Shown here one piece after another: positions 3,976 to 58,429 of a stretch of 64,000 bases of DNA. The number at the start of each line of letters is the position of its first letter. Position 1 is the first letter of the stretch. The position numbers and the translations under genes are program-made. Source of the DNA: Macrostomum lignano (Eukaryota); the NCBI GenBank assembly GCA_002269645.1, contig NIVC01000362.1, forward strand, positions 372,001-436,000, in the 5' to 3' direction. The notes below the pieces were generated by a model that did not search any database, had not been told where the DNA came from, and worked only from the letters and a program-made list of their open reading frames with translations.

Positions 3976-5387
3976 TGCTTTCCAGCTGATTGAAGGGGGG
4001 GGGGGCGGCCCCCCTTGGCTACGACCTTACATGTAAAAGCCATGGACAACGCACCTCACCTGGAATCTGGACTTTCGAATTTCAAATCAAGTGCACACTA
4101 ACAAGTTAGCCGAAATAAAGTTCGCAAAAATAATTGCTGGAGAGCGGCAATAGTCAAAATGCAGCACTGAACTGGGGTTTGACATATTCAGTGCAAAGAA
4201 ATCCGCTCTAGAAAAAATACAACTCAAATTATGCCTATATAGTTCCCGGTCTCCGGTACTCGTAGCATTTCACTAACAAAGAGAAGTCCAGAAGGCGATC
4301 CCATTGGAAAGGGAATTAAGTGCTATAAACTGAAAGCTTCCTATTCGCTAATGGATTAAGCATTTTGTAGCGAAAACCGGGATCTAGCAAACTTTGCCCA
4401 GCTTGCGATTGTAGCATCCTTTTATTTTAGTTGTTCATGGTAAGAGTATGCAAGAGTGCAGCCACTTGTGTTGGCATCAGAGGCGTAGCCATTTAGGATC
4501 TTTTTATTCATTAGGCCTGTCTTTGGAGGGACGCCTTGTGCCCAACTCTGGCTAACCATCCTGATCACCAAATGACATTGCTCAACTTTAACTACTTGCT
4601 TAGCAAACCCCTCAGACAGGTAAGAAGTGCAAGACACCTAATAGACAGCTATGGCGAATCACTTTGCATTCTTCTTCATATTAGTTGTTTGCAGCACACC
4701 CCATACGGAACTATCACTGAGGTGTGCTGCAGCTATCCAAACGCACGCCAGCTTTTTTATCTATAAAACGACATGAAATGCGAATTGTTAATTGCCCCTC
4801 TCCAGATACTGAGAAGCTGAGTAGAAAGTGGAAAAAAGCTTCATGAATGCAGATACACGCGTCGACAGCGTCATGTTTCAATGGGCTGCTTCGTGCCAAT
4901 AGGCGCACGAAGTACATTTATACCAGTAGACAATAGAAATTAAAGACGCTAACGGAAGCAAGCATTGTTGAGAACAATGGTATTTGTTTTTACTGGCGAA
5001 CGCAATCCGCTGCAAAGTTGCTGGCGATTGCTGCTGACCAATTATTTTAATGCGATTCTAAATCTGCTGCGATTGCTCTGCTGCTGATAGTAGTAGCGTG
5101 TGTTAAAACTGCTGCGGGCTGGGTCTAAGGCGCGCAGTCGGCATTTGCAATAATAATCTTGCGGACACAAGTTGCAGTAGTCTACTGTATAAGATTGAAA
5201 AGGGCTGGTAAAACAACAGTAAGGTTTGAGGAGTGCAGGCCCGGTGCGTTAGTTTTATTGTCCAGGTATTATCATATTAAAAGCGCGCGCGCGGCAATCG
5301 AAACAGTTCTTTAACATCTTTTAAACAAAGGTCAATTAGGTCGATTTTTATCCGGCGCATTACTGCTGGCGCGCTCGCTTGTTCAGC

Positions 5388-5873
5388 TTAAGATCGCTTG
5401 AACCGGTCGGACTCTTCGCTGTAGAACTTCTTGAATCGGTCTCCACCGTCGAAGAACTTCTTGAATCGGTCCCCGCCGTTGAGGAACTTCTTGAAGCGAT
5501 CTCCGCCAGAAAAGAACTTCTTGAAACGATCTCCGCCAGAAAAGAACTTCTTGAAGCGATCTCCGCCGGAAAAGAACTTCTTGAAGCGGTCGCCGCCAGA
5601 AAAGAACTTTTTAAAACGCTCGGCGTCGCCTCCATAGAAGCGTTTAAAACGATCGGAATTGATGTAGAAACGTTTGAACCGATCAGAGTCGTGGTAGAAT
5701 CGCTTGAAGCGGTCGGAGTCGTGGTAAAACCGCTTAGCCTTGAGCTGGGCAGCGCTTGCTTCAACCTGACGATCGCTGCCAGTCTCCTCGGCCGAACAGA
5801 ATCCAGCAGCCGCCACCAGAAGGAACAGGACGGCAGATGCGACAGCAACAGCCGGCTTTGTCCGAGTCGTCAT
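5388..5873 (-). CDS. Secreted neuropeptide precursor, 161 aa, 11 peptides
   Basis: N-terminal signal peptide (AVAVASAVLFLLVAAAGFCSA), then KR/KK-flanked repeats: FYHDSDRF x2, FYINSDRF, FYGGDAERF, FFSGGDRF x4, FLNGGDRF, FFDGGDRF, FYSEESDRF. Branch/acceptor-like CTAACAG lies just upstream of the ATG. Confidence 0.9.
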   Translation of the reverse strand: MTTRTKPAVAVASAVLFLLVAAAGFCSAEETGSDRQVEASAAQLKAKRFYHDSDRFKRFYHDSDRFKRFYINSDRFKRFYGGDAERFKKFFSGGDRFKKFFSGGDRFKKFFSGGDRFKKFFSGGDRFKKFLNGGDRFKKFFDGGDRFKKFYSEESDRFKRS

Positions 5874-6287
5874 GGCAACTAGTTTACCTCTGTTAGTTGA
5901 CTTTTCAAAACACTTGCTTCAAGTCGCGCAGCCGCTCGGTTAGAAAGAACGATTCCAACTCCAAGCTACAGGAATGGCAGTGAGCAGACGGGCTGTTTGG
6001 AACCCGAGCCAAAATAAGTAAGAGAAGCTGGGCCGGAACCAACCCGCGACGGGTTGATGACGAACCGGCTGCAGCCAATGACGGCTAAGCAGGCGCAGAA
6101 TTGGCAGGCTGGTGGGGGAAGATGAAGGAGAAATCTCCCTCCATAGCCCAATATGGCCAAACCGGAATGTTGTTGCCACCCACACGGCTGTACAACAGCG
6201 ATTCAATTAGCTGTTGAGAGAGGGAGAGTTTACAAAATGCTGTATGCAGGACATATACGAGCTATTTGCCGAGCTGTTGGGGCGGAG

Positions 6288-7452: not shown

Positions 7453-10400
7453 TCACGCCTCCGTGGGGGCCGGCTTGTCGCCGCCTTCGCCGTTGTCCGC
7501 AACAGCCGCGGCGGCTGGCTTTGATGCTGATTTCTGAATAATACAAATAATTACACGAGTCAGAGGTGAGAAAATGATTAGGGGTGCACCCGTTAGATAA
7601 AGACCGACTATTACCTAACTGATAAAGAGGCCATTGCCAGACTATTAACTGACTGATAAAGAGGCCAATGGTAATTAAGGGTGTGGCGACCCCCCAGTCC
7701 TTGGACTGAACAGCCGTAACGCAGCCTTCAGATGCGCCGCGCAATAGCTGCGGCTGAGCTGTCGGTTGCACATCTGCCCATTAGGGCAGGTGTAATCAAT
7801 TATTTTATTATAATTATTATGATTATGATTATTGTTATTATGAGCAAAACAGTTATTTATATTGTTTATTCACTTAATTCACTTAGAGGCCATATAGAAC
7901 TAAGCAAATTAGTGCTTTAATAAAGCACCGCCATAATTATTCAGATCAATGATGGCCGATTATAAATGGCTAACGAAATGGGAGGGGCCTTCGACTCATC
8001 ACAATTGCCATAATTGGGAGAAAGACAGGCATTCAGTCTTTGCTCTCATATTATTAAATTTATTTTGGATGAAAGCGTGCAGTTCACCTGCAGTGCCTTA
8101 GCTACCAATGCCTCCGCTAAAATTACCCATCAAATTAGTCACGCAATCCAAGCTGATCTATCTAGTTATTTATCGAGATATACATAAAACAGAGAATAAC
8201 TATTTTCCTATAGAAAAGGAGAATCATTCTATCCCTAGAGAAATAGAGTATAATTATACTCCTATAGAAATAGACAAACATCCTATCCCTATAGAAATAA
8301 AAAATAATTCTAGAGAAATAGAGAGCCAGACTATCCCTATATAAATAGAGATCGCTGATATTATATAAAATCGCTGATATAATATTCCAGTCTATTCCCA
8401 GAGAAATAGAGAGCCAGTCTATCCCTATAGAAATAGAGAGCCAGTCTATTCCTTTAGAAATAGAGAATCATTATACTCATAGAGAAATTGAGAGTCATTC
8501 TATTACTAGAGAAATAGAGAGCCATTCTATCCCTATAGAAATAGAGAGCCAGTCTATCCCTATAGAAATAGAGAGCCAGTCTATTCCTTTAGAAATAGAG
8601 AATCATTATACTCATAGAGAAATTGAGAATCATTCTATTACTAGAGAAATAGAGAGCCATTCTATCCCTATAGAAATAGAGAGCCATTCTATCCCTATAG
8701 AAATAGAGAGCCAGTCTATCCCTATAGAAATAGAGAGCCAGTCTATCCCTATAGAAATAGAGAGCCAGTCTATCCCTATAGAAATAGAGAGCCAGTCTAT
8801 CCCTATAGAAATAGAGAGCCAGTCTATCCCTATAGAAATAGAGAGCCAGTCTATCCCTATAGAAATAGAGAGCCAGTCTATCCCTATAGAAATAGAGAGC
8901 CAGTCTATCCCTATAGAAATAGAGAGCCAGTCTATCCCTATAGAAATAGAGAGCCAGTCTATCCCTATAGAAATAGAGAGCCAGTCTATCCCTATAGAAA
9001 TAGAGAGCCAGTCTATCCCTATAGAAATAGAGAGCCAGTCTATCCCTATAGAAATAGAGAGCCAGTCTATCCCTATAGAAATAGAGAGCCAGTCTATCCC
9101 TATAGAAATAGAGAGCCAGTCTATCCCTATAGAAATAGAGAGCCAGTCTATCCCTATAGAAATAGAGAGCCAGTCTATCCCTATAGAAATAGAGAGCCAG
9201 TCTATCCCTATAGAAATAGAGAGCCAGTCTATCCCTATAGAAATAGAGAGCCAGTCTATCCCTATAGAAATAGAGAGCCAGTCTATCCCTATAGAAATAG
9301 AGAGCCAGTCTATCCCTATAGAAATAGAGAGCCATTCTATCCCTATAGAAATAGAGAGCCAGTCTATCCCTATAGAAATAGAGAGCCAGTCTATCCCTAT
9401 AGAAATAGAGAGCCAGTCTATCCCTATAGAAATAGAGAGCCAGTCTATCCCTATAGAAATAGAGAGCCAGTCTATCCCTATAGAAATAGAGAGCCAGTCT
9501 ATCCCTATAGAAATAGAGAGCCAGTCTATCCCTATAGAAATAGAGAGCCAGTCTATCCCTATAGAAATAGAGAGCCAGTCTATCCCTATAGAAATAGAGA
9601 GCCAGTCTATCCCTATAGAAATAGAGAGCCAGTCTATCCCTAGACCCGCAATCAATCAATCAAGCTGCAACTCACCTGGGCGGCACTGTCGTGCTGAGCA
9701 AACTTGTCAAACATGCCATAGAAAGTCTTCTTCTGCCTATTCTTCTCCTCAATAATGCGCTGCTTGGCCAAAGCGATCTGCTGGGCAGCCGCCTGATTTC
9801 CCGGCTCGAGCTGGGCGACCTTCTCGAAATCCTCCCTGGCCTCATCATAGTCGTGAGTTGCCATGCGAGCCTGGCCACGCCGGAAGTAAGCCTTGGCGGC
9901 GTCAGCATTCAGTTTAATGGCTTCGTCGGCTTCCTCAATGCACTGACGATGATCGCCGAGTTTGAAGTGCACCAGACTCAAGTTGAGCCTGGCCGCCAGA
10001 AGCAGAGCGACCCGCTGCTGGCGCAACTCTTCCGGCTTGTCCTCGAAGCCGCTGTCCCATTTGAGAAAGTCGACAACGCGATTATAATAAGTCAGAGCTG
10101 GGCGCATTTTCGACTTTTTAAAATACTCTGTGCCCTTAGCTTTGAGCAGTTCGGCCTGGGCAACTTTTTCTTCTTCGTTGAGCTCCCAGCTTTCCTTCAT
10201 CTTTTCAAAATCAGTGAGCTCCAACTCGTAGACAACGGCAGCGTTGGCTGGCACATTCTGTGCCTGAGCATAGGTCTCAGACACGCTGAAACTCGCCTTC
10301 TCGCCTTTAGTCATGCTTCTCACAGCAAAATCAACGCCCTGCGGCAGTCCAGCCTCGTCGGCTAAACCAACTTCGAAGCTGACTCCCGTCCGAGAATCGA

Positions 10401-10932
10401 ACTCGCGACCTTCGTGCTTGCCAACCAAATTGACGGTGACCATTGCACCTATGCCAGGCTTCTGGTAGCCTTCGCCCTTGCGCAACCAGTGCTTAATAAC
10501 GCCTTTATCCTTGGCCTCGCTAACATCTTCGCCTTCCCAGCGAATCAGTTCGATGTTGAATTTCAACGCCGCATTAGGCGGAATCTTCGCCCCGCTGCCC
10601 GACTTGCCGTAGGCGTAGTCAGACCTCAGCACAATGTCGCACACCTCGCCTTGGCGCATTGTTTTCACGGCCTCGTCCCAGCCTTTGATGACCTGACCGG
10701 CGCCCAGCTTGAAGCTGAACGGCTCGTTGCGATCCCTGGACGAGTCGAATTTCTCGCCGTCCCGATCGCCGCCAAACAGAGTGCCGGTGTAGTGCACAAA
10801 CACGCTGTCCTCAACTGACGGCGTGACCTCGCCGACGCCTTCGGTCAGCACTTTTTTATAGACGCCGCCGTCGCCGCTGATATCGGCGAAGCCCTCGGGC
10901 GGAGTGAAATCATTATCGGCCGAGTCGGACAT
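7453..10932 (-). CDS. FKBP4: FKBP4/FKBP52-type TPR immunophilin, ~445 aa; join(10932..9676, 7533..7453)
   Basis: Two FKBP domains (VFVHYTGTL...KFDSSRDRNEPFSFKLGAGQVIKGWD; DKGVIKHWLRKGEG) plus three TPRs (KAKGTEYFK, LNLSLVHFKL, KAYFRRGQA). Donor CAG|GTGAGT at 9676/9675. Phase-0 terminal exon KSASKPAAAAVADNGEGGDKPAPTEA* ends in TEA like vertebrate FKBP4. FKBP4 versus FKBP5 orthology not tested. Confidence 0.88.
7680..7845 (+). mobile_element. 3' fragment of SINE family B with ATT-rich tail
   Basis: GTGTGGCGACCCCC...CAGATGCGCCGCGCAAT...GCACATCTGCC..TTAGGGCAGG followed by an (ATT)-rich tail. Matches the reverse complement of 39545-39660. Confidence 0.75.
8300..9643. repeat. 27-bp minisatellite (AGAAATAGAGAGCCAGTCTATCCCTAT) in the FKBP4 intron
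   Basis: About 40 near-identical copies, ending ~30 bp from the splice donor. Explains the spurious RDRLALYFY / GIDWLSISI ORFs. Confidence 0.97.
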
Positions 10933-11104
10933 CTTGGAAGAAAATTCTTTCAGGTTTATAAAAGTATTGGTTAGTTCTTGAGAAGATATAAGCGCATGCA
11001 TGGTTTTGAAATATGAGCATTGAATACTGATAGACTCAATACAATATATAATGTATATGTACCATAGACAGCTGGATTCATTTTTAGATCCAGATGCCAA
11101 ATAT

Positions 11105-14253: not shown

Positions 14254-17200
14254 TTAATCCCGCTTCGAAGAGCTTTTCTTTTTCTCCTTTTTACTTTTCT
14301 TTTTCTTCTGCTGATGCTTCCGTTTTTGATCATCTTTGCTCTTCTTACGCGGCGCGACATCCTCATCCGAGCCGGAGGCGGCCTTGCCGGCCCGGCGGTC
14401 GTTTTTGTCCGGCGTTGCCGAGGGGCTTCGGCGATCGGATTTCGATTTGTGTTTCCGCCTGCGGTCGCGTGGAATGAAGAATTTTGGGCGATAGTGAAAT
14501 ATGCGCTGGTTAAATACGAGTAGGCTTTATGACGTGGATCTGCCGTTTCTTAGAATTTACTTGACATTTCTTAGAACTGAATAATGTCCTAGCATTGAAC
14601 TTCAGAGAATTGAATCTCACTTTTTAAAAATAAAACCAGAATTTTTATTATCGAGTAGAGCCACAATTTCTAAGAATCAAAATTCGATTTCTTAGAATCG
14701 AAGTGCAATTTCTTAGAATCGAAGTGCCATTTCTTATAATCGAAGTGCAATTTCTTAGAAATCGAACTTGAATTTCTTAAAATCTAACCAAAATTTCTAA
14801 GAATCAAAACGCGATTCTTTAAAATCGAACTACAATTTCGACAGTTTTTAGCTTGGGGTTGCGATAGGGGCCTCGCGGCCTAATCGCGGCGTTCTGCTCC
14901 CCCCCCCGTCGGTAGTAAGCAAGTAAGTACAGTTTCTAATAAAAAACGCAGTTTCTTAGAATCGAGCCACAATTTCTAGGAAACAAATCGCGATTTTTTA
15001 GAATCCAACTTCCATTTCTTAGAATCGAACTTAAGCTCGTGGAATCTGAGACAACTTGCAAAATTATAATTGCCGCATTTGGATAATTAATCAGACTACA
15101 GTTTAAACAGAAATTATACTAGAATAAAAGCACCGGCGACAGCCAGCCGACTCACTTTCTCGGCGTCGTCTCTGGCTCGCTGGCAGACCGACTGCGGTCA
15201 TCTCGAACGTCGCTGTCGCCGCCTGCCTCGTTGCTGCCGTCGTCCGACTCGCGTCGCCGACGATGCCGCCGTTTCTTTTTATTAGCGACCGGCTTGGCAG
15301 GTTTGGCCGGCTTATTGCTAGAAGAAGCCGATTTCTTGGCCTTCTGCTTCGACTGTGTTTCGCTAGTTGTCGCCGCAGTGACTGGTTTGCTGCTATCAGC
15401 TGTCTGCTTTCGGGAGCTGCTGCGAGTGACGAAATATTTACTTGACCTTATTTTTACTAGTAGCAATATGTGAGATGTGGCGCCTGACTATAGAGATGTG
15501 GCGCTTGGCTATAGAGATGTGGCGCCTGACTATAGATATTTGGCGCCTGACTATAAAGATGTGGCGCCTGACTATAGAGATGTGACGCCTGACTGAGATA
15601 TGGCGCCTAACTATAGAGAGATGTGGCGCCTGACTATAGAGATGTGGCGCTTGGCTATAGAGATGTGGCGCCTGACTATAGATATTTGGCGCCTGACTAT
15701 AAAGATGTGGCGCCTGACTATAGAGATGTGACGCCTGACTGAGATATGGCGCCTAACTATAGAGAGATGTGGCGCCTGACTATAGAGATGTGGCGCTTGG
15801 CTATAGAGATGTGACGCCTGACTATAAAGATGTGGCGCCTGACTATAAAGATGTGGCGCCTGACTATAGAGATGTGGCGCCTGACTGAGATTTGGCGCCT
15901 AACTATAGAGAGATGTGGCGCCTGACTATAGAGATGTGGCGCTTGGATATAGAGATGTGGCGCCTGACTATAGAGATTTGGCGCCTGACTGAGATATGGC
16001 GCCTAACTATAGAGAGATGTGGCGCCTGTTTATAGAGATGTGGCGCCTGACTATAGAGATGTGGCGCCTGACTATAAAGATGTGGCGCCTGACTATAGAG
16101 ATGTGGCGCCTGACTGAGATATGGCGCCTGACTATAGAGAGATGTGGCGCCTGACTATAGAGATGTGGCGCCTGACTATAGAGATATGGCGCCTGACTTT
16201 AGAGATTTGGCGCCTAAACTGACTATAGAGATGTGGCGCCTGGCTTTAAAGATAAGGCGTCTGACTGAGATGGCGCCTGACTATATAGAGATGCGGCGCC
16301 TGACTATAGATGTGGCGCCTGACTGTAGAGATGCGGCGCCTGACTATAGAGGCATGGAGCTTTAACAGACTAGAGGAGAGCTGGTGCCTTAAAAAGTGTC
16401 ATATGCGCCAATGCGATGCTACAAAATTGAAACAGTATTTTGACTATTCAATCAAAACGATAGTAGATATTGGAGTACTGCAGACAGAAAACAATATAGT
16501 TTGCGCAAATTACAAAGCTATTAATAATACGAAGAAGCAATTTCTTTAATTTGATTTTTTATGAAAATTGAAACTGCATTAAATTTGGCCCTGGCTCATA
16601 TTGCTTCTCTAGAAACGCTTTCTATGCTTAAACAAACACAGATTTTCAGCTTGGCAACGATAGCTTTTTGAATTGAATGGAATTGCTTATAATCGATGAG
16701 TCATTGTGCTATTGATAATAACCATTCTAGGAAGTAAGTCATTGTGCTATTGATAATAACCATTCTAGGAAGTAAGTCATTGTGCTATTGATAATAACCA
16801 TTCTAGGAAGTAAGTCATTGTGCTATTGATAATAACCATTCTAGGAAGTAAGTCATTGTGCTATTGATAACCATTCTGAGGAAATTGGTCATTGTGCTAT
16901 AATAACCATTCTGAGGAAATTGGTCATTGTGCTATTGATAATAACCATTCTGAGGAAGTAAGTCATTGTGCTATAATAACCATTCTGAGGAAATTGGTCA
17001 TTGTGCTATATAACCATTCTAGATGGGTCATTGCGATAATCAAATCATTCTAAGAAATAGGCGATTGTGTTAATGATCGTTATAGGAAACGGCCAATTAA
17101 ACGTTCCTATTACTGAGCATACTAGAAATGCGTCATTGTATCAATTTACTCAGGGAACACTCAGTCATGCACTCCGCCCATCCCCTCATTGCTCACCTAA

Positions 17201-19696
17201 CGGCGGCTTCTTCAACTGGCGGCGGGCTTGCTTTCAAGTGGCTTTCAATCATTTTGGCAATGACCGGATTGTGATCCGCTGCCAGGATGCTGCTCCCTTT
17301 GCCATCACCGGCTGTCTGACTGCTGCGACTACCGCTGCTACTTCGACTGTCGCCGCTCTGACTGCGACGCTTTCCATAATCTCTATCCCGATGCTTATCA
17401 GATCGACGCTGCTGCCGTTTATCGCTTGTAGACGCATGCTGCTGCTGTTGTTGCTGACGCGATTTCTTTTTCTGTTGCTGCTTTTTTCGACGAGAGTTGC
17501 GCTCAGAAGATGAGACAGACGAACCGCTGGCGGCTGAGTCGCGGCTCTGACTCCGACTGCGATCTTTTTGGCCCCGGCCAGCGACGCCTACGGCTGCCGA
17601 GTCGCCGCCAGATTTCTTCATAAATTCTTTCATGAAGCCTTCGAAAGCGCGACGATATTCTTGCATATTCAAGGGACCGGCGGCGGAGCTGGACAAACTC
17701 AAGCCAGCAGCGTCGCCTCCGCCAGGACTGCCGGATCGGCTTCGACTTCTGCCGCCGCCGCCGCCGCCGCGTCGGTTTTTGTGACGCCGCGAGGCAGCCG
17801 ATGGAGGCGAACGCGAACGGGACGCGGACGCTTCTGAGCGGCTGCCGCTGCGGCTGCGGTTTTTGAGTCGCCGATTGCTCGGACGCGGGGGCGAACGGCG
17901 GCGAGGCGCCCTTCGAGTGCTGCCGCTGCGGCTCCGGTGACGGTGTCGGCTGCGGCTTCGACTAACACTTCGGCTGCGACTGCGGCTGCCGGAGCGTCGT
18001 CGCTGTCGATGACGCGATCCGGAAGTGGCAGCGCCAGTCGTCGAAACTGACGGAGATTTTCGTCGGTTATGCCGCCTAGAGGACGGACTCTGACTAGAGG
18101 AGCCAGACTTCTGCTGCTTCTGCGGCGGCGGAGCTGGCCGTCTCTTGCCCAAGATAAAGTCTAAACAGGCGTCTTCCTTCCGACGCTTCTCAGCCGCCAT
18201 AAGGCGCAGCTTAATCCGGTTAAATTCTTCTTCGCTCATCGGCGCAACGCCGGTCGGTCGAATTGGAAGGAGACCCGCCGCGGCTCCTGGTGCTGCTGCG
18301 GCTGCTACGCCAGCGGCTGCAGTTGGCAAAGCCCCGGAAGACTGCCGCCCGGCAGCGTCAAGACCGACAATAGCAGGAGCGGCGGCTACGGGCAAAGTAG
18401 GAGCTACAGTAGCCGTGGGAGCCGGAGCTGCTGCAGCAACTGTGGAAGAAACAATTGCATGATGCTGCGAATGTTGAATAGGAACAAGCGGATTAGGAGC
18501 GCCAGGATGCTGCTGAGCAAAATACTGCTGCTGCGCTCCACCAGCCTGCATATGCACCTGATGAAGCGCATGATGCTGCTGATAACCCGGCTGCCCCATT
18601 GGACCTTGAGTCAGCGTCACAGCAGGATGATGCTGAAGATGAGGTCCATGCGGCAAAATCGGCGGAACTATCGAACTTTGTGGCAGCTGGTGTTGCTGGT
18701 GCTGAGATACTGCTGGCTGCATCATCTGAGGTATCCCCTGATGACCCATGTGCTGCTGATGAAAGTGCGCCTGCACCGGCTGAAGGGTGCCAGCATCTGG
18801 CCTAGTAGCATCGTATCGCTGCTGCATAAAGGGCTGACTGTGATGCTGTGCCTGCTGATAATAGGCTTGATTATGCTGCGGGTATGCCTGCTGTTGGGAC
18901 TGGCTGTAGTGGCCAGGCCTTTGATGCTGCTGCGCATTATAACCAGGCGCGTGGTGCTGGTGTTGCTGCTGCTGCTGCTGTTGGGACGGATTTCCCTGGA
19001 GCGAAGTGGAAGACGAAGTGCGCTGCATTTGCGCACTGTCGCTGCTGGTAGCGCCTGCCTGAGACGCCTGCGGCTGCTGTGCGTACTTCTGATTCATCGT
19101 GACCTGCTGCTGGTGCATCATACTAAGAGCAGTGTCGCTCTCGGAAGATCGTTTTAACCTACTGCCGCCACTGCTGCTACTAGGCCCACCAGTTAGTTCT
19201 GGCAACGGCACCAAGCTATAATCCTCTTCCTCATCCTTGTTAAGGCCTATCTCTTCATCCAGTTCGTCGAGCTCAGCTTCGTCTAGTGCGCTACCGTGTC
19301 GATCAAGATTCAAATGAACGATGACGGACGCTTCGGACTCGTCAGAGTCTGAATCAGCGGCCTCTGGGGACTTGGCCATTTCGTCAACTGCAACGACGCT
19401 AACACCGCCGCCGTTGCCGCTTTTGGTGTCCGCAGATGCGGATGAAGCAGATGAAGCAGCGGCAACGGCGGAAGACGGGCCTGATAAAGCTACAGGTGCT
19501 GAAGCTGTAGTGGTCAGCTTCGGCGCAGATGCAGCAGGATTCTGACGCCTAACTAGCGGAGGCTGTGGCTGCTGCTGCTGCTGCGGTCTTTGTTGCGTCT
19601 GAAAGTGCTGCTGCTTTATTTGTTGTTGTTGCTGTTGTTGGTGCTGTTGCTGCTGTTGTTGTTGTTGCTGTTGTTGGTGCTGTTGTTGTTGTTGCT

Positions 19697-19728
<32 letters not shown>

Positions 19729-22700
19729 TGAACAACAGCCGCTCTTTGAGCAGCCTGCTCTAATTGTATCTGTTCAATTTTGTGCTCACGCTGTTTCATA
19801 AAGAAAGCGGTGACCCGGTTTCTGGTGGCAATATTGCACACTAGCATGTCCGTATCGTCAACGGACTCGCCGCAATTCGGACAGCTGTGAAGGGTGGCAC
19901 TGTCAGACTCAGTGTCGAATAGTCTGTTAATAATGCAGTCGTTGCAATAGGTAGAGCCGCAGCATTTAATAATAACAGCGTCTTTAAATACGTCTTGGCA
20001 CAGCGGACACTTCAAATCGTCCGGTATGTCCAACTGTTCCATGGAGTCAACAAGAGTTGACGGATTCTCCTCTTCGCTGAATGGTTTTTTCTCTTTCTTG
20101 CCTAACAGTTTCGCTTCCAGATCCATCTTCGGTATGGCATACTTGCCGTCCTTGGTCATTAGAGCTCCTGGGACAGGATTGTCCACGTACAGCAGGGAGT
20201 CCTTCGGCAGGCCAGTTGTTAGCTTCATTCGCAGCTTTTTATTGTCAATCACCCGGCCGTCGGCGCCTCGGGCACCCTGACAGTCGTAGATCCAGTGGCC
20301 CTTCTGGCCGCAGCGGTGGCACTGGTAGCCCGGCGGCGGATTTCCCGTAGGCCGCTTGCGCACGCTGTAGCTGTAAGTGAATGCGGTGCGGGAGGGGGAT
20401 GCAAATACAGCATTAAAATTTTGGTTCTGGGGAACTAAATTCAAGATGGGGTGCGCAGCGCTTGTGTGTGCTCAGGATTCTGTGGAATGGGTAGAATTGC
20501 CTCGGCGCTGGTGTCGTGGGACGATGTCGTTATTATGAACTGGAGATGTGCGCTGCGAACTGTGAGGATTTAAGACGGGGATTATCCAGATTTCCCGATA
20601 TGAGGATTAAGCAAAGTTGAGGCTCCGTGATATGAGAATGACTTCTCTGAGACCAGCACGAGCATGCACAGGCCGAATGGATACTGTCATGGTCATATTT
20701 AAGCAGTTTACACACGCGCACACACTCTGTGCCGTAGTGGGCTGCCATCTTACGGATGGAAGTTTGCAAGGGTCAAAATTTTCAAGATATTCGATAGCTA
20801 AACTTAATGCATTATCTAGATGCCTAGCACAATATTTGATCAATAAGAGCATTTGTTAATTACCGGAGAAAATGAGTTCAATTATGGATACAGAAGAAAC
20901 GATACGTGTGCTTTATCGGATTGACAACGACAATCCAAACGAAAGTTTATCATATCGATCGACAACATTTTTTTGTCTTTTTAAGCGAAGTAGCTAAAAG
21001 CTTCAAGGTTTTCAAATAATTTGCTACAACTATCGAAAAAATTAGATCCAAAATATTCCGCTAAATTATTGATCAAATTTCAGCACGCGAATACTGGGAG
21101 CCAGCTATAAGAGTTCATTTAAAGTACATGGTGCCCATTTAGATTAAGTGATGAATAACGCCTACTTACTTTACGTGTGCATATTTTTGAGTGGAATATT
21201 CAACCATCTTTTTAATTTTCTCATCCTCGCTCATGTCGGTCCGCTTCGACAAGTCGATCATGCTGGCCGTGGTGGCTGGCGGCTGCCGCTCCTTCGGTTC
21301 CTCCCGCGGTTGCTACAATTCAATTATAAAAATAAGAATTAGCAAAAAATAGTTACTAATAAATAATTTAAAAAGGCCAAAAACTCAGTAAGAAACTTTT
21401 GCAGCATGTAGGCAACCTTTTGGTGGATTTAGCCGGTGTTGACATCGACGATTCAAGTTATTCCAATCGTTTAATTGCGAAATAAGTCATATTTTTAATC
21501 GTTGATAAATGCCTTAATTACAATATGTTATGTAACTGCAAGAGCCTGAGAAGTGTTCTTCAGACAATGTTCCACATAACTCCCATAAAACTTGGCGGAG
21601 TTCATCATTTAGTATATTGTATTAATAGCCGAATGGAGTATGGAATGATTAACTGCTCATCGGGCAATGTGCATTGTAATACTTCCTTGCTGCAAAACTA
21701 GGAGATTACAACATGTCCTTTATTCTCAACCATTTAAGTATATTTGGTGAGGTAAATTTAACTGAAAAAGTACATCATAAAACACTCATAAACGCCATAA
21801 TATTTTATAGAAAAATAGTTGAAAATGATATTATAAAGATAAAATGCAGCTCTTAACACAATACTTTGAATGCAGCAGACAAGCTTATTTACGCAGATAT
21901 GAAAATGCAATATTTATTTTGTCAATAGCACTTTGAATGTATGCACAATGGATAAAAGCAGCTTTTTCATAGTTCTGAATTTGGCCACCTAAGTCTGAGG
22001 AATGATATACACTTGCAGAGACACGCAAACTGCAATGGAATGCGATGCAATCATAAAAGTACAAATTTGAATTATTAAACTAAACTAAAGATGGTCCACG
22101 AAACGAAAGGGTGACGGAACACGTGTGGATTTTTCTTTAATTATCGTTCTCTCCACCACAGAATGCATAAAGATGCGCATTTATATGAGCACAGACATGC
22201 ATTATTTAAGCGCAAGATGTGCCAAGCATAGCAATAGCATTATCGGGTCTGACTATAACTGTAATATAGTACATTTGAAGAAATATTTATGCAAAAAATA
22301 TGAGCTCGCATATTTTGCAATAGCAAAAAAGGACACATTGTTAGTTACGAAGACAGACAGACAGATCAGACAAAGAGATTATTTTAGAAAATATCAATCA
22401 AAAGAGGCATAAAAGCCGGTATGTCACGACAAGTTAATCGTTTGTTTGACAAATTTGGCAAATTGCTTGTAAAAGACGTACTGCTGAAAGCTTAACCCGA
22501 AAATGATTTCTCTCTTTTTTAAATATCTCTCATTTCAATTGTCTCATCAGTCATCATCTTCTTTACCTTTAGAGAGCTACAATAAATCAGCTTTAAAAAA
22601 CCGTCGCACGAACCAATTCGCTACTTACATAAATGTTTGGCTTCGGAAAGTTGGAACTGAAATTGAATAATTGGGTAATTAATATTTATGAGGCACTCAT

Positions 22701-24929
22701 AACAACTATTGATACGTTTTGTGATATGTAGAAATATTTTATACACTTCCGCTCGGCATAGGGGCCATTTCAGGAGCTGGTTGAAGGGGGGTATCAGAGC
22801 TGGTTTGGGGGATTATCAGAGCTGGTTGGGGGGATTATCAGAGCTGGTTGGGGGGTTATCAGAGCAGGTTTCGGGGGGGGGGTTATCAGAGCTGGTTTCG
22901 GAGGGGGGGGGTTATCAGAGCTGGTTTCGGAGGGGGGGGGGGTTATCAGAGCTGGTTTCGGAGGGGGGGGGGTTATCAGAGCTGGTTTCGGAGGGGGGGG
23001 GTTATCAGAGCTGGTTTCGGGGGGGGGGGGTTATTAGAGCAGGTTTCGGGGGGGTTATCAGAGCTAGTTGGGGCGATTATCAGAGCTGGTTAGGGGGGAT
23101 TATCATGCAGAGCTGGCTGGGGGGGATTATCAGAGCTGGTTGGGGGGGATTATCAGAGCTGGCTGGGGGGATTATCAGAGCTGGTTGGGGGGGATTATCA
23201 GAGCTGGTTGGGGGGATTATCAGAGCTGGTTGGGGGGATTATCAGAGCTGGTTGGGGGGGATTATCAGAGCTGGTTGGGGGGGATTATCAGAGCTGGTTG
23301 GGGGGGATTATCAGAGCTGGCTGGGGGGGATTATCAGAGCTGGTTGGGGGGGATTATCAGAGCTGGTTGGGGCGATTATCAAAGCTGGTTTGGGAGGGCG
23401 ATTATCAGAGCTGTTTGAGGCGATTATCAGAGCTGGTTAGGGGGGATTATCAGAGCTGGTTGGGGGGGGGGGATTATCAGAGCTGGTTTAGAAGAGATGT
23501 TTCATGGCTGAATAAGGGGCGACTCTCAAGCCAGTGTGATATTAAGGTGCAGTTCTTAACAAAAAAGACGATTTCTTTGCAAAGGAAAAAAATGCTTATA
23601 GATGTCAACAAGAGCATGGAGAATAAAAACTCACTCTTTTCCTGGCGGCCTACTCTTAGCAACTCGTTTCACAATAACAGAGGAATAGTTGTGCACCACT
23701 TGATTCTCGGACGCGAAGGCTGCAATAAAATTTGGGATTGGGACAGGTGAACTCAGGATCTAAATGATTCAAAGATCTGGGAATATAGGAGTTTATCCCA
23801 GCTTAGGAATCTGGAGATGTAATTTTCCTACTTGAATAGCGAATAGAACTCTCCAAGCGATGATTTTTTAATAAATAGCATTTCCATTTTCGAGTGGCGG
23901 AAGGTGATAAGGAAAAAGTCATAATTTACGACTGCTATATATTTTAAAATAATTTGAAGCTTTATTATCAATTTTACTGCCAAGTAAAACTAAAGGCTTT
24001 TATCAGCTATTTAGGTTTATTGGTAATAACTAATTAAAAGACCAATTTGACTAATGCCTCGAAGGCAGAATCTTAGATCTGGAATCCAAGAATAGGGATT
24101 ATCTCAATCTGAGGATCTGGGAATAATAATTATCTCAATATGAGGATCTGGGAATAGGGATTATCCCAATCTGAGGATCTGGGAATAGTAGGGATTATTT
24201 CAAACTGAGGATCTGGGAAGTAGGGATTATCTCAATCTGAGGATCTGGGAATAGTAGGGGTTATCCCAATTTGAGGATCTGGGAATAGGGATTATCTCAA
24301 TCTGAGGATCTGGGAATAGTAGAGATTATCCCAATCTGAGGATCTGGGAATAGTAGGGATTATCTCAATCTGAGGATCTGGGAATAGTAGGGATTATCCC
24401 AATCTGAGGATCTAAGAATAGTAGGGATTATCCCAATCTGAGGATCTGGGAATAGTAGGGATTATCCCAATCTGAGGATCTGGGAATAGTAGGGATTATC
24501 CCAATCTGAGGATCTGGGAATAGTAGGGATTATCCAATCTGAGGATCTGGGAATAGTAGGGATTATCCCAATCTGAGGATCTGGGAATAGTAGGGATTAT
24601 CCAATCTGAGGATCTAGGAATAGGGAATAATCATTATCTGAGGATTTGGGAATATGGATTATATCAATCTGAGGATCTGGAAATAGTTCTAATCTTTGAG
24701 ATGCGTTATCTCAATCTGGAGTAGATAGGCTTGAGACCAACAAGAGATTAAACAACTCACGCTTTCCAGTGCTAGAATCGTACAATTCCAAATCGCAGTC
24801 TTGCACTTTAAAGCCGCGCCGTTCGCGGATGACTTTGCGCAGATCGCGAACAGTCAGGCCGGAGCCGTCGAAGTGAATCTCCTCCATTTCTAAGTCGGAT
24901 TTCAACTTGAAGAATATGGTGGAAGCCAT
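14254..24929 (-). CDS. RBBP6: RBBP6/Mpe1-like E3 ligase, ~1349 aa; join(24929..24761, 23719..23635, 22576..22567, 21312..21170, 20370..17197, 15419..15156, 14458..14254)
   Basis: DWNN domain (MASTIFFKLKS...DLELYDSSTG; NYSSVIVKRV), MSEDEKIKKM, zinc knuckle CHRCGQKGHWIYDC, RING CPLCQDVFKDAVIIKCCGSTYCNDCI...CPNC, polyQ, RS-rich region and Lys-rich tail. All junctions are GT-AG and phases sum to 4050 nt. The 10-nt exon is inferred from phase. Confidence 0.9.
14660..15030. repeat. Degenerate ~21-bp repeat (TTTCTTAGAATCGAAGTGCAA) in RBBP6 intron 6
   Basis: Repeated TTCTTAGAATCG / TTCTAAGAATC units. Confidence 0.7.
15472..16350. repeat. 21-bp minisatellite (GAGATGTGGCGCCTGACTATA) in RBBP6 intron 5
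   Basis: About 40 copies with a visible higher-order block of variants. Confidence 0.95.
16700..17030. repeat. 38-bp minisatellite (GTCATTGTGCTATTGATAATAACCATTCTAGGAAGTAA) in RBBP6 intron 5
   Basis: About 9 tandem copies. Confidence 0.92.
22790..23490 (+). repeat. G-run minisatellite (GATTATCAGAGCTGGTTGn) in RBBP6 intron 2
   Basis: About 28 copies of ~22-28 bp, each with a G5-G12 run. Explains the GGIIRAG / GDYQSWL ORFs. Confidence 0.95.
24090..24700. repeat. 34-bp minisatellite (CTGAGGATCTGGGAATAGTAGGGATTATCCCAAT) in RBBP6 intron 1
   Basis: About 18 tandem copies. Confidence 0.95.
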
Positions 24930-29489: not shown

Positions 29490-31532
29490 TATATTCACAC
29501 TGAGAAAACGAGGGAGGCACTGGAGGTGACAGAAGCAGCCTCAAGAGACTAAAGGACGTGAGGCACTGGTGGCAGCAGCAGCCTTAAGAGACTGAAGGAC
29601 ACGAGGCACTGGAGGTGACAGTAGCAGCCAAGAGACTGAAGGACACGAGGCACTGGAGGTGACAGCAGCAGCATCAAGAGACTGAAGGACACGAGGCACT
29701 GGTGGCAGCAGCAGCCTTAAGACTGAAGGACACGAGGCACTGGAGGTGACAGAAGCAGCCAAGAGACTGAAGGACACGAGGCACTGGAGGTGACAGTAGC
29801 AGCCAAGAGACTGAAGGACACGAGGCACTGGAGGTGACAGTAGCAGCCAAGAGACTGAAGGACACGAGGCACTGGAGGTGACAGTAGCAGCCAAGAGACT
29901 GAAGGACACGAGGCACTGGAGGTGACAGCAGCAGAACTAAGGTTGCCTTGGAGGAGCTCACGAACCGGCAGGCAACCGAGAAAGAGAACAAGGAAACTGC
30001 AGAGAGCTGGATCGCGAACAGAGACACCGACTACATCCTGTACACAGATGGGTCGGTGGGCAAGGACGGTAAAGGTGGAGCTGGTCTCATCATCTACCGG
30101 GGCAGCACGAAGCAGGGCGAAGCTCGAGGATCAGCGGGACAGGGATGCTCGTCCACGCAAGCCGAGATCAGGGCACTCCGTATGGCAATCGATTGGTTGG
30201 ACGCGGCAGACTGGAAAACGGCCACCATCGTGAGTGATAGTCAAGCAGCGCTCCGGGCTTTCCAGGACAGATGGAAGGGTGAATGGCAGGACGTGAGGCA
30301 TTGCTGGCTAAAGATCGCGAAGTGGCCTGAAAGAACCCTGACGATGAAGTGGGTGGCAGGACATGTCGGAGTGGAAGGAAATGAGCTGGCGGACAGGCTG
30401 GCGGCAGAGGGACGAGGCGAGGAAGATGACGTCTGGACAAGGAAAGCGGCCACTAACCACATTCGTAGAGCCCTGGAAGGCAGGATGGAGTGGAAGCACG
30501 AGAGGGCGAAGGAAATCTACGCGAAGAAGCAGCCGGACTGGCGGAAGGAAGGAAAGTGGTACAGAGCGGCCAGGCGCGATTTTGCCAGGTTCAGGACCGG
30601 ACACCACACGGAGCTGGCGGAGTATGGTGCTCGGATTGGAGCCAGGGAGAGTGGAACGTGCCGGCTGTGCAATCTCGAGGAGGAAGGCACGGAACACGTA
30701 CTGTTGAAGTGCCCAGTGATGGACAACATCAGGAGGAAGACCGGCATCACGGAGATGGGCGACTTATGCGCCATGCCCGAAGAATGCCGGGCCCTTTGGA
30801 ACGAGTTCCGAGACCGGGTTAGACTGAAGAGAGAGTAGGACTGTGGTACGGCAACGCCAACAACAACAACAACAGCAGCAGCATCAAGAGACTGAAGGAC
30901 ACGAGGCACTGGAGGTGACAGTAGCAGCCAAGAGACTGAAGGACACGAGGCACTGGAGGTGACAGCAGCAGCATCAAGAGACTGAAGGACACGAGGCACT
31001 GGTGGCAGCAGCAGCCTTAAGACTGAAGGACACGAGGCACTGGAGGTGACAGAAGCAGCATCAAGAGACTGAAGGACACGAGGCACTGGAGGTGACAGTA
31101 GCAGCCAAGAGACTGAAGGACACGAGGCACTGGAGGTGACAGCAGCAGCATCAAGAGACTGAAGGACACGAGGCACTGGAGGTGACAGTAGCAGCCAAGA
31201 GACTGAAGGACACGAGGCACTGGAGGTGACAGCAGCAGCATCAAGAGACTGAAGGACACGAGGCACTGGAGGTGACAGAAGCAGCCACAAGAGACTGAAG
31301 GACACGAGACACTCGAGGTGACAGCAGCAGCCAAGAGACTGAAGGACACGAGGCACTGGAGGTGACAGCAGCAGCCTCAAGAGACTGAAGGACACGAGGC
31401 ACTGGAGGTGACAGTAGCAGCCAAGAGACTGAAGGACACGAGGCACTGGAGGTGACAGCAGCAGCATCAAGAGACTGAAGGACACGAGGCACTGGAGGTG
31501 ACAGCAGCAGCCTCAAGAGACTGAAGGACACG
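29490..31532. repeat. 44-46-bp minisatellite (GAGACTGAAGGACACGAGGCACTGGAGGTGACAGCAGCAGCATCAA), interrupted by a LINE fragment
   Basis: Tandem copies on both sides of 29935-30871. Confidence 0.95.
29935..30871 (+). mobile_element. 5'-truncated non-LTR retrotransposon (I-group-like): RNase H plus C-terminal CCHC motif, (CAA)n tail
   Basis: Open frame with LYTDGS, AEIRAL, IVSDSQAAL, WVAGHVGVEGNELADRLA, FRTGH and CRLC..EGTEHVLLKCP. Stop at 30838, (CAA)n tail, and ACAGCAGCAG duplicated at 29925-29934 and 30872-30881. Confidence 0.9.
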
Positions 31533-32849
31533 AGATTGCAACGCACAGCATGCGCCAAAATATTCCGAGGCGATGACAACTACATGTTGATTCATAAATA
31601 AATTACAAATTCATAGCCAAAACCTGTAGTGTAACGCACACATACGAAGAGAGACGAAAAAGGAACTCAGAGATTGAGGGGTAAAAAAGCTTTAGGTATT
31701 GATTTCTGTTTATTGAAAGAGTGCAAGATAGACAGGGCGGGCGGTAGGAAGAGAAAAACCGATTTTGCTACTCAAAGCCTTCTTGACCTAAACTGGTGCT
31801 TCAATTTCAGGAAAGAAAACACCCAATTTTTAAGTGCCTCTTAAGCTGGAAAAGGGGCAAGAAGACGTTGTCAGTAGAACCACTTTAATAAATAGGGTTT
31901 ATGGTTTTCTGTTTACCCAACACTTTCACGACATGTACTTTTTAACTAATAAACTAATGTTCGTCTATTGTGAATATCTTATGGTCTAATCTAATAATAA
32001 ATCAACGCGAAAGAAAAAGTTGAGAAATAAAACAACACAGAGACATCATAATGATTGCTACTAAAGGCGGTATAATTAAAAATCTCTCCAGAGAAACCGT
32101 ATAATTAATAGTTCGATTAAATTAGTTTTAGTACTACTTAGTTACTCGCGCATATCACCTTGTCGGTGTTTTTTGATCGAGAGAAATAATTGTGACTATA
32201 AATAGTTTACCGTATACATAATATAAGCGTAGACTAATATTACCATAATAGCGTGACTAATATAAACTACGACTTGTTTTGGCACAAATAATTGCACGAT
32301 GCACACTTACTTTGACTGGTTTTATTATTATTATTATCACTCAATAAGCTATATTGATAGACGCAACAGTTATTATCAGAAACAGAGGAAATCTATTATA
32401 CTATTCATAACAGCAACAAACCACCATTTAACTAGAACAAGCAGAAAGAAGGCAAATAACAGACATTAACAGCAAGTATCAGAAATATATGATTAAAATT
32501 GAGAAGATTTACTACCATTCAAAAGTACATTAACAGTCTGTTTTTATAAACAATAAATCGATTTCCGCTTTAGTTCAGTACTTATCAGCTTGTTTAATCG
32601 GCTTTCTTGCCGCTATTCACCGATATGTAGTGATAGAGTATGACCAAAAGGAACAGGCATACGCTGAGCAGATTGGCAAAGATTGACAGTTGCACGTCCG
32701 TGATCATGATGGGTCCAGTGTATTGCTGCTTTTAGTGCATGCAATGTATTGTTTTTACTTGAGCACGATTATTGAAAACATAATGAGCAGTTATGGGTCT
32801 AAAATATTAGCATGCGTAACTAACTACCTGCTTCTATCTGAACTTTAAT

Positions 32850-33515
32850 ATGTGAATCTGTCTATTAGTGTGTGAATGGATCTAATAGCGTGTGAATCTG
32901 TCTATTAGTGTGTGAATGGATCTAATAGTGTGTGAATCTGTCTATTAGTGTGTGAATCTGTTAATTAGTGTGTGAATTTGTCTATTAGTGTGTGAATCAG
33001 TCTATTAGTGTGTGAATCTGTCTATTAGTGTGTGAATCTGTCTATTAGTGTGTGAATCTGTCTATTAGTAGGTGAATTTGTCTATTTGTGTGTGAATTTG
33101 TCTAATGGTGTGTGTGAATGTCTATTGGTGTGTGTGAATTTGTCTATGGTGTGTGTGAATTTGTCTATTGGTGTGTGTGAATCTGTCTATTAGTGTGTGA
33201 ATGGATCTAATAGTGTGTGAATCTGTCTATTAGTGTGTGAATCTGTTCATTAGTGTGTGAATTTGTCTATTAGTGTGTGAATCTGTCTATTAGTGTGTGA
33301 ATCTGTCTATTAGTGTGTGAATCTGTCTATTAGTGTGTGAATCTGTCTATTAGTGTGTAAATCAGTATATTCGTGTGTAAATCTGTCTATTAGTGGGTGA
33401 ATTTGTCTATTTGTGTGTGAATCTGTCTATTGGTGTGTGTGAATCTGTCTATTAGTGTGTGAATCTGTCTATTAGTGTGTGAATCTGTCTATTAGTGTGT
33501 GAATCTGTCTGTCTA
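32850..33515. repeat. 20-bp minisatellite (TGTGAATCTGTCTATTAGTG)
   Basis: About 32 tandem copies. Confidence 0.95.
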
Positions 33516-34742: not shown

Positions 34743-34981
34743 GTTCTTGATGCTAATGACCAACTATTTGCTTTAGATTAATTTTAGCAAGCAATTATAC
34801 AAACAATATTCAAGTCTTTGTCGTCGAAACAGTTAAGCATGCATTCAATATTCGAAATGATGGTTAAAAATTAAAAAATCATAAAGATAAAAACACAAAA
34901 CACTTCTGACTCAACAGCTGGATAAAATAGTTAGTTAGGATTAGAAAGTAAAGCTGGGTTATCTCTAACACACTGCATAAC

Positions 34982-35722
34982 CAAACGGGAAGTCAACTGA
35001 CCTACATGACCAAACGGGAAGTCAAATAACCTACATGACCAAACGGGAAGTCAAATAACCTACATGACCAAACGGGGAGTCAAATAACCTACATGACCAA
35101 ACAGGAAGTCAAATAACCTACATGACCAAACGGGAAGTCAAGTAACCTACATGATCAAACGGGAAGTCAAATAACCTACATGACCAAACGGGAAGTCAAA
35201 TAACCTACATGACCAAACGGGAAGTCAAATAACCAACATGACCAAACGGGAAGTCAAGTAACCTACATGATCAAACGGGAAGTCAAATAACCTACATGAC
35301 CAAACGGGGAGTCAAATAACCTACATGACCAAACGGGAAGTCAAGTAACCTACATGACCAAACGGGAAGTCAAATAACCTACATGACCAAACGGGAAGTC
35401 AAATAACCTACATGACCAAACGGGGAGTCAAATAACCTGCATGATCAAACGGGGAGTCAAGTAACCTACATGACCAAACGGGAAGTCAAATAACCTACAT
35501 GACCAAACGGGAAGTCAAGTAACCTACATGACCAAACGGGGAGTCAAATAACCTGCATGATCAAACGGGAAGTCAAATAACCTACATGACCAAACGGGAA
35601 GTCAAATAACCTACATGACCAAACGGGAAGTCAAATAACCTACATGACCAAACGGGAAGTCAAATAACCTACATGACCAAACGGGAAGTCAAATAACCTA
35701 CATGACCAAACGGGAAGTCAAA
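34982..35722. repeat. 29-bp minisatellite (CAAACGGGAAGTCAAATAACCTACATGAC)
   Basis: About 25 tandem copies just upstream of RNASEK. Confidence 0.96.
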
Positions 35723-37034
35723 CAACTAGACAAACAACTAACAAAATGTAAACCAAAGTTAAAAGACTTTTACAGTTTAAACTAAGCAAATTTTATATAT
35801 TTCAACAATTTAGCGTGCATTCGAACAAAAATTGGATATCAATAGCGGAATCTATATAAAAATAGTTATGAAATACTGAATTAGAAAAACACGCAGAACG
35901 CAGAGATTTCGCGAGATGGGAATTTAATTTAGAGATAATTATTGGGAGAAAAATATTAAACTAAATTATTACTGTATAGGACTGATTCCAAATTAATTTA
36001 TCAACGAGATTTGATTTACAAATAAGTAAAGATGAAAGTCGCACGTAAGATTCAATAACGATTATTACAAATATTTAAAATCGCTAGCACAAAGAATCAA
36101 ACATCTTCACCAAACAACTCCCACGTAATGCACGTTAATTAGAAAAAATAACTGAATTTTTACATAGAAAAATCTTTACCACAATTAAAAAACACAACGA
36201 TTACAAATTAACCGCAGTACACTACTCAATCTTGACAACTTAAAGTAGTAGATAGCGTATTTTTTCTTGACGTGTGCTTTAGATAATTATACTGCGCAAA
36301 ATTTACAGATAAGGACAATTAAATATAGCTTGTACTGTCTCTCTGATAATGGAATTCTTCATTAACTCACAGGAAATTGACACGTAAATCTTAAAATAAA
36401 GTATTTATACCATTAGTCTGCATTTAGCCAATATATTGCTTGTTTCATTCGAATAGAGAAGCCAATAGACAGAACTCAAAGGGATGGGGCAGCCAGCTGA
36501 CTCAACACAAAGGAAATCAAATGGGTTTAAGATGGACTCTAAAGATTAGGAAGAAGCTATGTTAAGGGCCTTTGGTTGCTACTTAAAGGGCGTAACGGGG
36601 TCAACTGACCCCCTCACTGAGGGTGTCACGGCTCAGGGTGGGTGGGGGGCAACGGGGTCAGATGACCCCCCGTCGAGTAAATCAGAGGGGGGAGATGACC
36701 ACCTTTCAAGTAAACCAGAGAGGGGTCAGATGACCCCTCACGAGGAAAACAGAGGGGCTACGAATTAAAAAAAGCCATACTTTTTACCTGCCAGGTTGTT
36801 ATCCAGGATTTTAGAGGAAGAGCAAGGGGGTCCGTTGACCCCGAAAAATTGATAAAAAATGTCTTACTAAAAAACCTTATCAAAGGATATGGAGTCAGCT
36901 GACCTCCCTACGCGCTAGACTCGACCCTGCTCCAATCAGATTAGTGCATACTTCTACTGTTGACAAGTGAATTATCAAATTCATGTAATAAAGAATCGCG
37001 TATAGTTTAATAAAACAACAAACAATCGTACGCA

Positions 37035-42290: not shown

Positions 42291-42291
42291 C

Positions 42292-42309
42292 TGGAGGCAG
42301 CGGTGGGAT
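42292..42309 (+). promoter_or_regulatory. Primer-binding site, tRNA-Leu type
   Basis: TGGAGGCAGCGGTGGGAT begins 1 nt after the LTR and matches 17/18 to the complement of a tRNA-Leu 3' end as I recall it (TGGTGGCAGCGGTGGGAT). Confidence 0.8.
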
Positions 42310-42378
42310 CCGACTTCGAAACACCCAAGCCAACCGCCCTTTTTCGAGAACGACTTTTCGGTCAGCTACGAGATCAGC

Positions 42379-58100: not shown

Positions 58101-58429
58101 TAAATTTTACTGAACAGTCAATAAATAGAATTAGCCGAATTCGGTACGCATTAAGGGCAAGGGCCGACTAATCCTTTACGAAACGAAGTTAATGCTGCAT
58201 TAGTCAATTATTTGCGCACAGAAACTTGGAGATTTTGAATATGGAGAGATCGGACAAAGAGAGGTAACGGTGGGAGTCTGAGAGGGAGGAAGTTGGGCAT
58301 CTGGAAAGTTATTCTGATTCCCTGATGGTTTTATCTTGGTCATGGAGCATAATTTTATTTTCTGCCAGACTTTGCAGCATTAATAATAAAATAATCGGAT
58401 CTAAGGTACGGACACATACTCGTACCTTT

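Follow-up and report, generated by a model that had tools for sequence, protein, structure and literature searches.

The open reading frame (ORF) at positions 5388-5873 on the minus strand of the window, the 64-kb stretch of DNA analysed here, is very probably a real protein-coding gene of Macrostomum lignano. With clearly less assurance, we think it likely that this is an unannotated single-exon gene for a small secreted multi-copy precursor of the proneuropeptide or prohormone type, restricted to its lineage. It is best filed as an orphan case of a well-known kind of gene, the multi-copy secretory peptide precursor of neuropeptide type.

Layout of the precursor

The ORF is complete and comprises, in a single exon, 161 codons from ATG to the TAA stop. 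Its translation starts with MTTRTKPAVAVASAVLFLLVAAAGFCSA, continues with EETGSDRQVEASAAQLKA-KR and 11 repeat units, and ends with one Ser. Among the 161 residues there were 29 F, 21 K, 18 R, 16 G and 15 D.

Residues 1-28 (5790-5873, minus strand) form a predicted signal peptide, MTTRTK / PAVAVASAVLFLLVAAAGF / CSA, with cleavage predicted before EE. As judged by eye and by hydropathy, it has three parts: a basic n-region, an uncharged core of 19 residues with Kyte-Doolittle values of 2.6-2.9, and a CSA/E cleavage-type motif. For a multi-copy proneuropeptide we looked for such an N-terminus on a short precursor (<500 aa), and the 161 aa found here agree with this. The acidic spacer EETGSDRQVEASAAQLKA comes next (5730-5789, minus strand) and leads into the first cleavage site, KR, in the context K-A-K-R. 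Signal peptide and spacer make up a non-repetitive leader of 48 codons before the array, starting at the ATG. At the other end, the last KR is directly followed by a Ser codon and the TAA stop (5388-5393, minus strand). About 130 nt 3' of the stop there is an AATAAA hexamer, a candidate polyadenylation signal (5254-5259, minus strand). On the other side of the gene, CGTCA occurs twice as a half-CRE motif at ~190 and ~210 nt before the ATG (6058-6083, minus strand), but motifs this short carry no weight.

The array holds eleven units of 8-9 residues with the consensus F[YFL]x3-4[DE]RF, with KR or KK between them. Nine units are 30 bp long and two are 33 bp long. Units 1-3 (5640-5729, minus strand; 3 x 30 bp) read FYHDSDRF-KR, FYHDSDRF-KR and FYINSDRF-KR. 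Unit 4 (5607-5639, minus strand; 33 bp) reads FYGGDAERF-KK and is a hybrid of the two unit types, combining FY with GGD and KK. Units 5-10 (5427-5606, minus strand; 6 x 30 bp) consist of four copies of FFSGGDRF-KK, followed by FLNGGDRF-KK and FFDGGDRF-KK. Unit 11 (5394-5426, minus strand; 33 bp) reads FYSEESDRF-KR. The 11 units thus give similar short peptides between convertase-type sites, with KAKR at the entry and KR-S at the tail, and seven distinct peptides are predicted from them. In none of the 11 units does a Gly stand directly before the K/R pair.

An initial annotation, made from the letters alone, had the coordinates, the 11 copies and a consensus of the F[YFL]xxx[DE]RF type right, and its signal peptide and its lack of a Gly amide donor were borne out by the translation. 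It had also split the precursor into two blocks, FY..SDRF/KR (type A) and FF.GGDRF/KK (type B). Both unit types exist, but unit 4 is a hybrid and unit 11 is again of the FY..SDRF/KR type. The layout is therefore A A A A/B B B B B B B A, with the FF.GGDRF/KK block inside the array, and by this arrangement the block sits within an older array. Its further claim, that the block is a recent 30-bp expansion, held up, because units 5-8 are nearly identical (1-3 bases apart, all differences synonymous) and the number of units differs between two genomic copies (10 vs 11). Tandem Repeats Finder (TRF) described the 30-bp array as 6.2 copies with 88% matches and no indels. Judged from these patterns, the FF.GGDRF/KK block is a young and still unstable tandem expansion.

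Coding gene or open minisatellite

In the M. lignano genome ORFs alone are weak evidence for a gene, because minisatellites with long ORFs are very dense. The 64-kb window contains more than 20 separate minisatellite arrays with periods of 20-73 bp, for example at 15472-16351, 22774-23488, 24093-24687, 30872-31535, 32851-33510, 34976-35726 and 57479-58101, and several of them are open in two or three frames. The ORF at 5388-5873 could likewise be a non-coding 30-bp minisatellite, and not a gene, if its frame is open by chance and a hydrophobic stretch happens to precede it. Such an origin would fit the abundance of open arrays in the window and the two further frames that are also open over the precursor array. 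It would also fit the NCBI annotation, which has no gene model for the precursor at the allelic site on NIVC01000268.1, and the lack of homologues in our searches. We nevertheless regard it as very improbable, on the following grounds.

The variation among units is gathered at the third codon position, where 14 of the 20 variable sites within blocks fall (binomial P = 9e-4). Codon differences within blocks were synonymous in 57 cases and non-synonymous in 18 (16:4 in block A and 41:14 in block B). The synonymous excess was found only in the frame of the precursor; in the other five frames, compared over all nine 30-bp units, most differences were non-synonymous. The first Phe, the D/E, the Arg, the last Phe and the basic pair are invariant across units, while their codons are not: the invariant Arg is encoded by CGC, CGG, CGT and CGA, and Phe, Asp and Lys each occur in both of their codons. 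This comparison of units within the array points to purifying selection on the peptide cores. Control minisatellites of the window whose period is a multiple of three (21-30 bp) had no consistent third-position bias.

The structure of the ORF also speaks against a chance frame. Its length variants are multiples of three, and since units are only 30 or 33 bp long, the reading frame is kept across them. Behind the ATG come a signal peptide of textbook form and then a spacer free of repeats, and the stop stands right after KR-S. The other genomic copy likewise has an uninterrupted frame.

A second genomic copy

The second copy (L001:13920-14375, on contig NIVC01000268.1 of GCA_002269645.1) is an intact ORF of 151 codons with ten units. 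Compared with the window it has one in-frame 30-bp unit fewer, FFNGGDRF taking the place of FLNGGDRF plus FFDGGDRF, and a single substitution in the signal peptide, Val to Phe. The two ORFs are 99.1% identical. The adjacent flanks are as similar as the ORF, with 99.2% identity over 500 bp upstream and 98.0% over 200 bp downstream, so the likeness of the two copies does not speak for constraint on the peptides. Upstream of the ATG, identity falls from 99.2% in the nearest 500 bp to 97.3% further out, a difference too weak to interpret.

The window and NIVC01000268.1 are collinear, with ~94-99% identity depending on the segment. Over the ~20 kb compared, BLAST segments were 82-96% identical, and identity within 2 kb of the gene was ~97-99%. 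As the two are collinear but not identical, the window is, on this comparison, another haplotype, homeologue or assembly of Macrostomum lignano. The species itself follows from a neighbouring gene: an ORF for an FKBP4-type immunophilin (9652-11100, minus strand), 3.8 kb upstream of the precursor, is 100% identical to BOX15_Mlig024991g2 of M. lignano, which is located on the same contig NIVC01000268.1 of GCA_002269645.1. A flatworm origin is hence supported.

Predicted processing and function

After removal of the signal peptide in the ER, the precursor would enter the regulated secretory pathway, where by analogy a PC2-type convertase would cleave on the C-terminal side of every KR or KK, sites known here as sequence motifs. 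A carboxypeptidase E-type enzyme would then trim the basic residues, again by analogy. As no Gly would be exposed, amidating enzymes would lack a substrate and the peptides would stay free acids. The predicted products are 11 free-acid octa- and nonapeptides: FFSGGDRF (four copies), FYHDSDRF (two copies), FYINSDRF, FYGGDAERF, FLNGGDRF, FFDGGDRF and FYSEESDRF. Presumably they would act as intercellular signals at a receptor. For the precursor we infer transcription, the cell type, cleavage, the free-acid state in vivo and the signalling function.

KK is generally a less reliable convertase site than KR. Processing at both kinds of site is known from the planarian Schmidtea, where mass spectrometry detected non-amidated multi-copy peptides cut at KK and KR, e.g., KK.YSYYDSIGSGLL.KR, and where the masses of the PPP-1 and PPP-2 peptides were approximately halved after pc2 RNAi (Collins et al. 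2010, PMC2953531). Knock-down of the pc2 homologue present in M. lignano had a severe effect on hatchlings (PMC4490696).

The main functional rival to a neuropeptide is an exocrine product of gland cells. In that case an adhesive, prostate/seminal, rhabdite or mucus gland cell, and no neuron, would secrete the repetitive precursor, either as an intact disordered protein rich in Phe, Lys, Arg, Gly and Asp, or as a source of peptides with an exocrine role, e.g., as pheromone, seminal or defence peptides. A signal peptide and a composition of this kind also suit a secreted low-complexity protein, and the tail and prostate glands of M. lignano express many lineage-specific secretory transcripts. 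On the other side, dibasic pairs at strictly regular intervals, a K-x-K-R entry, a final KR-S and an 8-9-mer conserved from one pair to the next form the classic layout of a prohormone. Further, the predicted peptides, which have Phe at both ends, are near-neutral to acidic (net charge ~0 to -2), unlike typical antimicrobial or adhesive peptides. We consider a gland product unlikely, yet the alternative to take most seriously, and keep to the neuropeptide-type precursor.

Searches for relatives

The exact precursor protein was absent among ~15 billion collected sequences. A word-indexed search of 5.8 billion cluster representatives, at E <= 0.01 and at E <= 10, returned 41 candidates that shared words with the precursor, none of which scored. 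Pfam had no match at E <= 10, and a scan of metagenomes gave 475 pattern matches, none of them confirmed. In an HMMER scan of 1.84 billion representatives there were 49 matches at E <= 1e-3. We inspected 38 of these, and all but four EFLGamide precursors were translated period-10 repeats. These repeat proteins (with stretches such as …GGDR…, …DRFQRG… or …PFKLDPDR…) were rejected as relatives, being compositional artefacts with G-G-D-R or D-R-F in common.

Published precursor sets were searched too. The motif of the precursor was absent from the planarian prohormone tables, from the supplement of the polyclad larval atlas, from the npp set of the cestode Taenia and from the spiralian precursor compendium of Thiel et al. 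2021 (2.76 million characters). The acoel set likewise held no relative, although it supplied the DRF-KR precedent discussed below. A full-text literature search with the peptide strings and with DRFKK/DRFKR returned irrelevant matches only. The initial annotation had recognised no family, and likewise we found no named family containing the precursor in the libraries, in Pfam or in the published precursor sets; the flatworm npp catalogues of McVeigh 2009 and Koziol 2016 lay outside this scope, and an earlier naming is possible.

These negative results rest on protein libraries and published precursor sets, with few flatworm transcriptomes covered. The libraries include at least one transcript set from a related flatworm, as seen from an FKBP with 71% identity in Logan run SRR30276804. 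Short-read assemblies probably tend to break at 30-bp tandem repeats. As far as these collections reach, the family appears to be restricted to the Macrostomum lineage or diverged past recognition.

Comparison with known peptide families

The precursor could also descend from a known bilaterian family and have diverged strongly; the candidates are pedal peptide/orcokinin, an RFamide (FLP) minus its Gly, and the EFLGamide/TRH type. We compared its peptides with ten multi-copy peptide families by shuffle-controlled alignment, which did not discriminate, since scores for unrelated families reached those of the candidates. Membership in one of these families is, in our judgement, rather improbable, as detailed below. 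Of the three origins considered in the initial annotation (a lineage-specific ligand family, an RFamide family without amidation, a distant pedal-peptide/orcokinin relative), none gained support from our comparisons.

Closest in kind, judged by layout, is the pedal peptide/orcokinin type, to which a distant relationship had been suggested. Both have non-amidated, multi-copy peptides; they differ in length and core, as pedal peptides/orcokinins have ~11-20 residues with a conserved core and the peptides here have 8-9 residues and lack it. The nearest examples are Smed-ppp-1 and Smed-ppp-2 of planarians. Like the M. lignano gene, each encodes a small precursor that has a signal peptide and, between KR/KK sites, non-amidated copies in tandem. 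Their peptides resemble ours in beginning with aromatic residues and Asp, in being rich in Gly at the centre and in ending hydrophobically, and FFDGGDRF can be aligned with PPP-1, (S)FYD--PIGGGLL, and FYHDSDRF with PPP-2, YFDKIGSDLL. However, these alignments require gaps of 2-3 residues, do not stand out statistically from chance, and have shuffle z values (2.2 and 3.9) no higher than those of the unrelated acoel MRF (6.4) and planarian spp-1 (5.4). PPP-1 and PPP-2 are also longer (11-12 residues) and follow [FY]D.IG..LL, whereas the M. lignano peptides end in DRF and have neither the Ile-Gly core nor the Leu-Leu end.

In RFamide precursors each copy carries a Gly before the basic site as the amide donor. 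The M. lignano precursor resembles the RFamides (FMRFamide-like) in its multi-copy structure and in the C-terminal Arg-Phe, an ending common to FLPs. It differs in the acidic residue at position -3, in the obligatory N-terminal Phe and, above all, in the donor: RF was found in 11 of 11 units and a following Gly in 0 of 11. Since an amide donor is lacking at every one of the 11 sites, RFamide membership fails. Descent from an RFamide that had lost amidation, as had been considered, is possible but unsupported.

A useful precedent for free-acid peptides ending in -DRF, and for labile amidation, exists in acoels. The 'DRFamide (FxxxFamide)' precursor of Diopisthoporus gymnopharyngeus has several xFVDRF-KR copies without Gly beside amidated copies (Thiel et al. 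2018, PMC6188537). Like the M. lignano precursor, it is a lineage-restricted multi-copy precursor with free-acid DRF copies from a small marine worm. It belongs to another phylum, Xenacoelomorpha, mixes in amidated copies and has the spacing F-x-x-x-F, compared with F-x6-7-F here. The peptides of M. lignano do not fit FxxxFamide: position -5 is D, N, G or E and not Phe, F/Y occupies the first two positions, and F stands at position 8 or 9. The tripeptide DRF that the two precursors have in common is too short to argue homology. Orphan multi-copy peptides are also documented in acoels, as is amidation that is mixed or that differs from one species to the next for the same kind of multi-copy peptide (Thiel 2018, PMC6188537).

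The EFLGamide type provided the only genuine prohormones among the library matches inspected (E 1e-6 to 1e-4). They were four proteins (P0141, P0147, P0161 and P0166) with 5-10 tandem RFSEF[LIV]GG-KK units. Like the FF.GGDRF/KK block, the lophotrochozoan EFLGamide/FSEFLGamide precursors have period-10 repeats with KK sites and much F, G and K. They give amidated products (Gly-Gly-Lys-Lys), and the block A units of the M. lignano precursor show no similarity to them. In the BLASTP alignment the cleavage sites were out of register: KK of the query stood opposite their Ser-Glu, and their KK opposite Gly-Asp of the query. With cleavage sites aligned to peptide cores, the match reflects periodicity and composition and not homology. 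Repeat artefacts also outscored the EFLGamide precursors by far in the HMMER scan. We rejected membership in the EFLGamide/TRH type, given the register and the missing amide donor.

A bolder proposal is that the peptides are ligands of an unrecognised signalling system restricted to Macrostomorpha, with a free-acid -DRF end. It would have arisen from an RFamide or pedal peptide/orcokinin ancestor, by loss of amidation and shortening of the peptide, or de novo, by expansion of a minisatellite behind a signal peptide. We hold this specific proposal to be on the unlikely side, apart from the broader assignment to a proneuropeptide-type precursor.

Significance for flatworm neuropeptide research

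M. lignano is a transgenic and RNAi-amenable model. If the reading as a peptide precursor is right, the gene would give this species a candidate signalling molecule, a free-acid F…DRF peptide in eleven copies, and would show that small repetitive secretory genes are overlooked by genome annotation. According to a 2026 review (PMC13551398), work on flatworm neuropeptides has concentrated on parasitic species and freshwater planarians, with polyclads a recent addition. The neuropeptide complements of flatworms are not yet thoroughly sampled, and for this field the precursor would be a worthwhile addition.

In kind, an orphan precursor is unsurprising, as lineage-specific multi-copy peptides are present in the Thiel 2018 and Thiel 2021 surveys. 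Precursors of orphan multi-copy peptides, and copies that have changed between the amidated and the free form, are already on record (Thiel et al. 2018, PMC6188537). Should the gene truly lack relatives, it would document how a peptide family recently arose and expanded, its copy number differing between genomic copies. A new signalling system, if true, would offer a young, copy-number-polymorphic example of the birth of a neuropeptide family in a genetically tractable flatworm. A gland product, or an unexpressed sequence, would be of minor interest.

Genomic neighbourhood

Exact-sequence look-ups of five other ORFs of the window gave no record, and Rfam and tRNA scans of the 64-kb window found nothing. 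The exact sequence of an intact 766-aa ORF (58430-60730, minus strand), located in an AT-rich stretch (GC ~0.3-0.4), was absent from the protein collection. Its sole Pfam match was DUF1258 (E = 5e-14), and it may be transposon-derived.

A 27-bp minisatellite (8207-9642) starts ~10 bp past the stop of the FKBP4-like gene, at the expected site of its 3' UTR. It has ~53 copies with 90-97% matches and higher-order periods of 54 and 135 bp, and contains ORFs of 340-356 aa in two frames.

Two retroelements were recognised. A Ty3/gypsy-type LTR element (41968-48590, plus strand) carries Retrotrans_gag, RVT_1, RT_RNaseH and rve domains; since gag, RT, RNase H and integrase lie on separate ORFs, its polyprotein frame is interrupted. 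Its G + C content is 56-62%, compared with 31-45% around it. An ORF of 296 aa with RNase H / RVT_3 / zf-RVT domains (29948-30838, plus strand), probably the tail of a non-LTR retroelement, is flanked by 44-46-bp minisatellites (29514-29934 and 30872-31535).

From cellular genes, we detected a large RBBP6-like single-exon ORF (17193-20444, minus strand) with a zinc knuckle, a RING domain and a long tail of poly-Gln and Arg/Ser-rich sequence. Another exon (37865-38476, minus strand) belongs to a lysosomal membrane protein of the NCU-G1/GLMP type.
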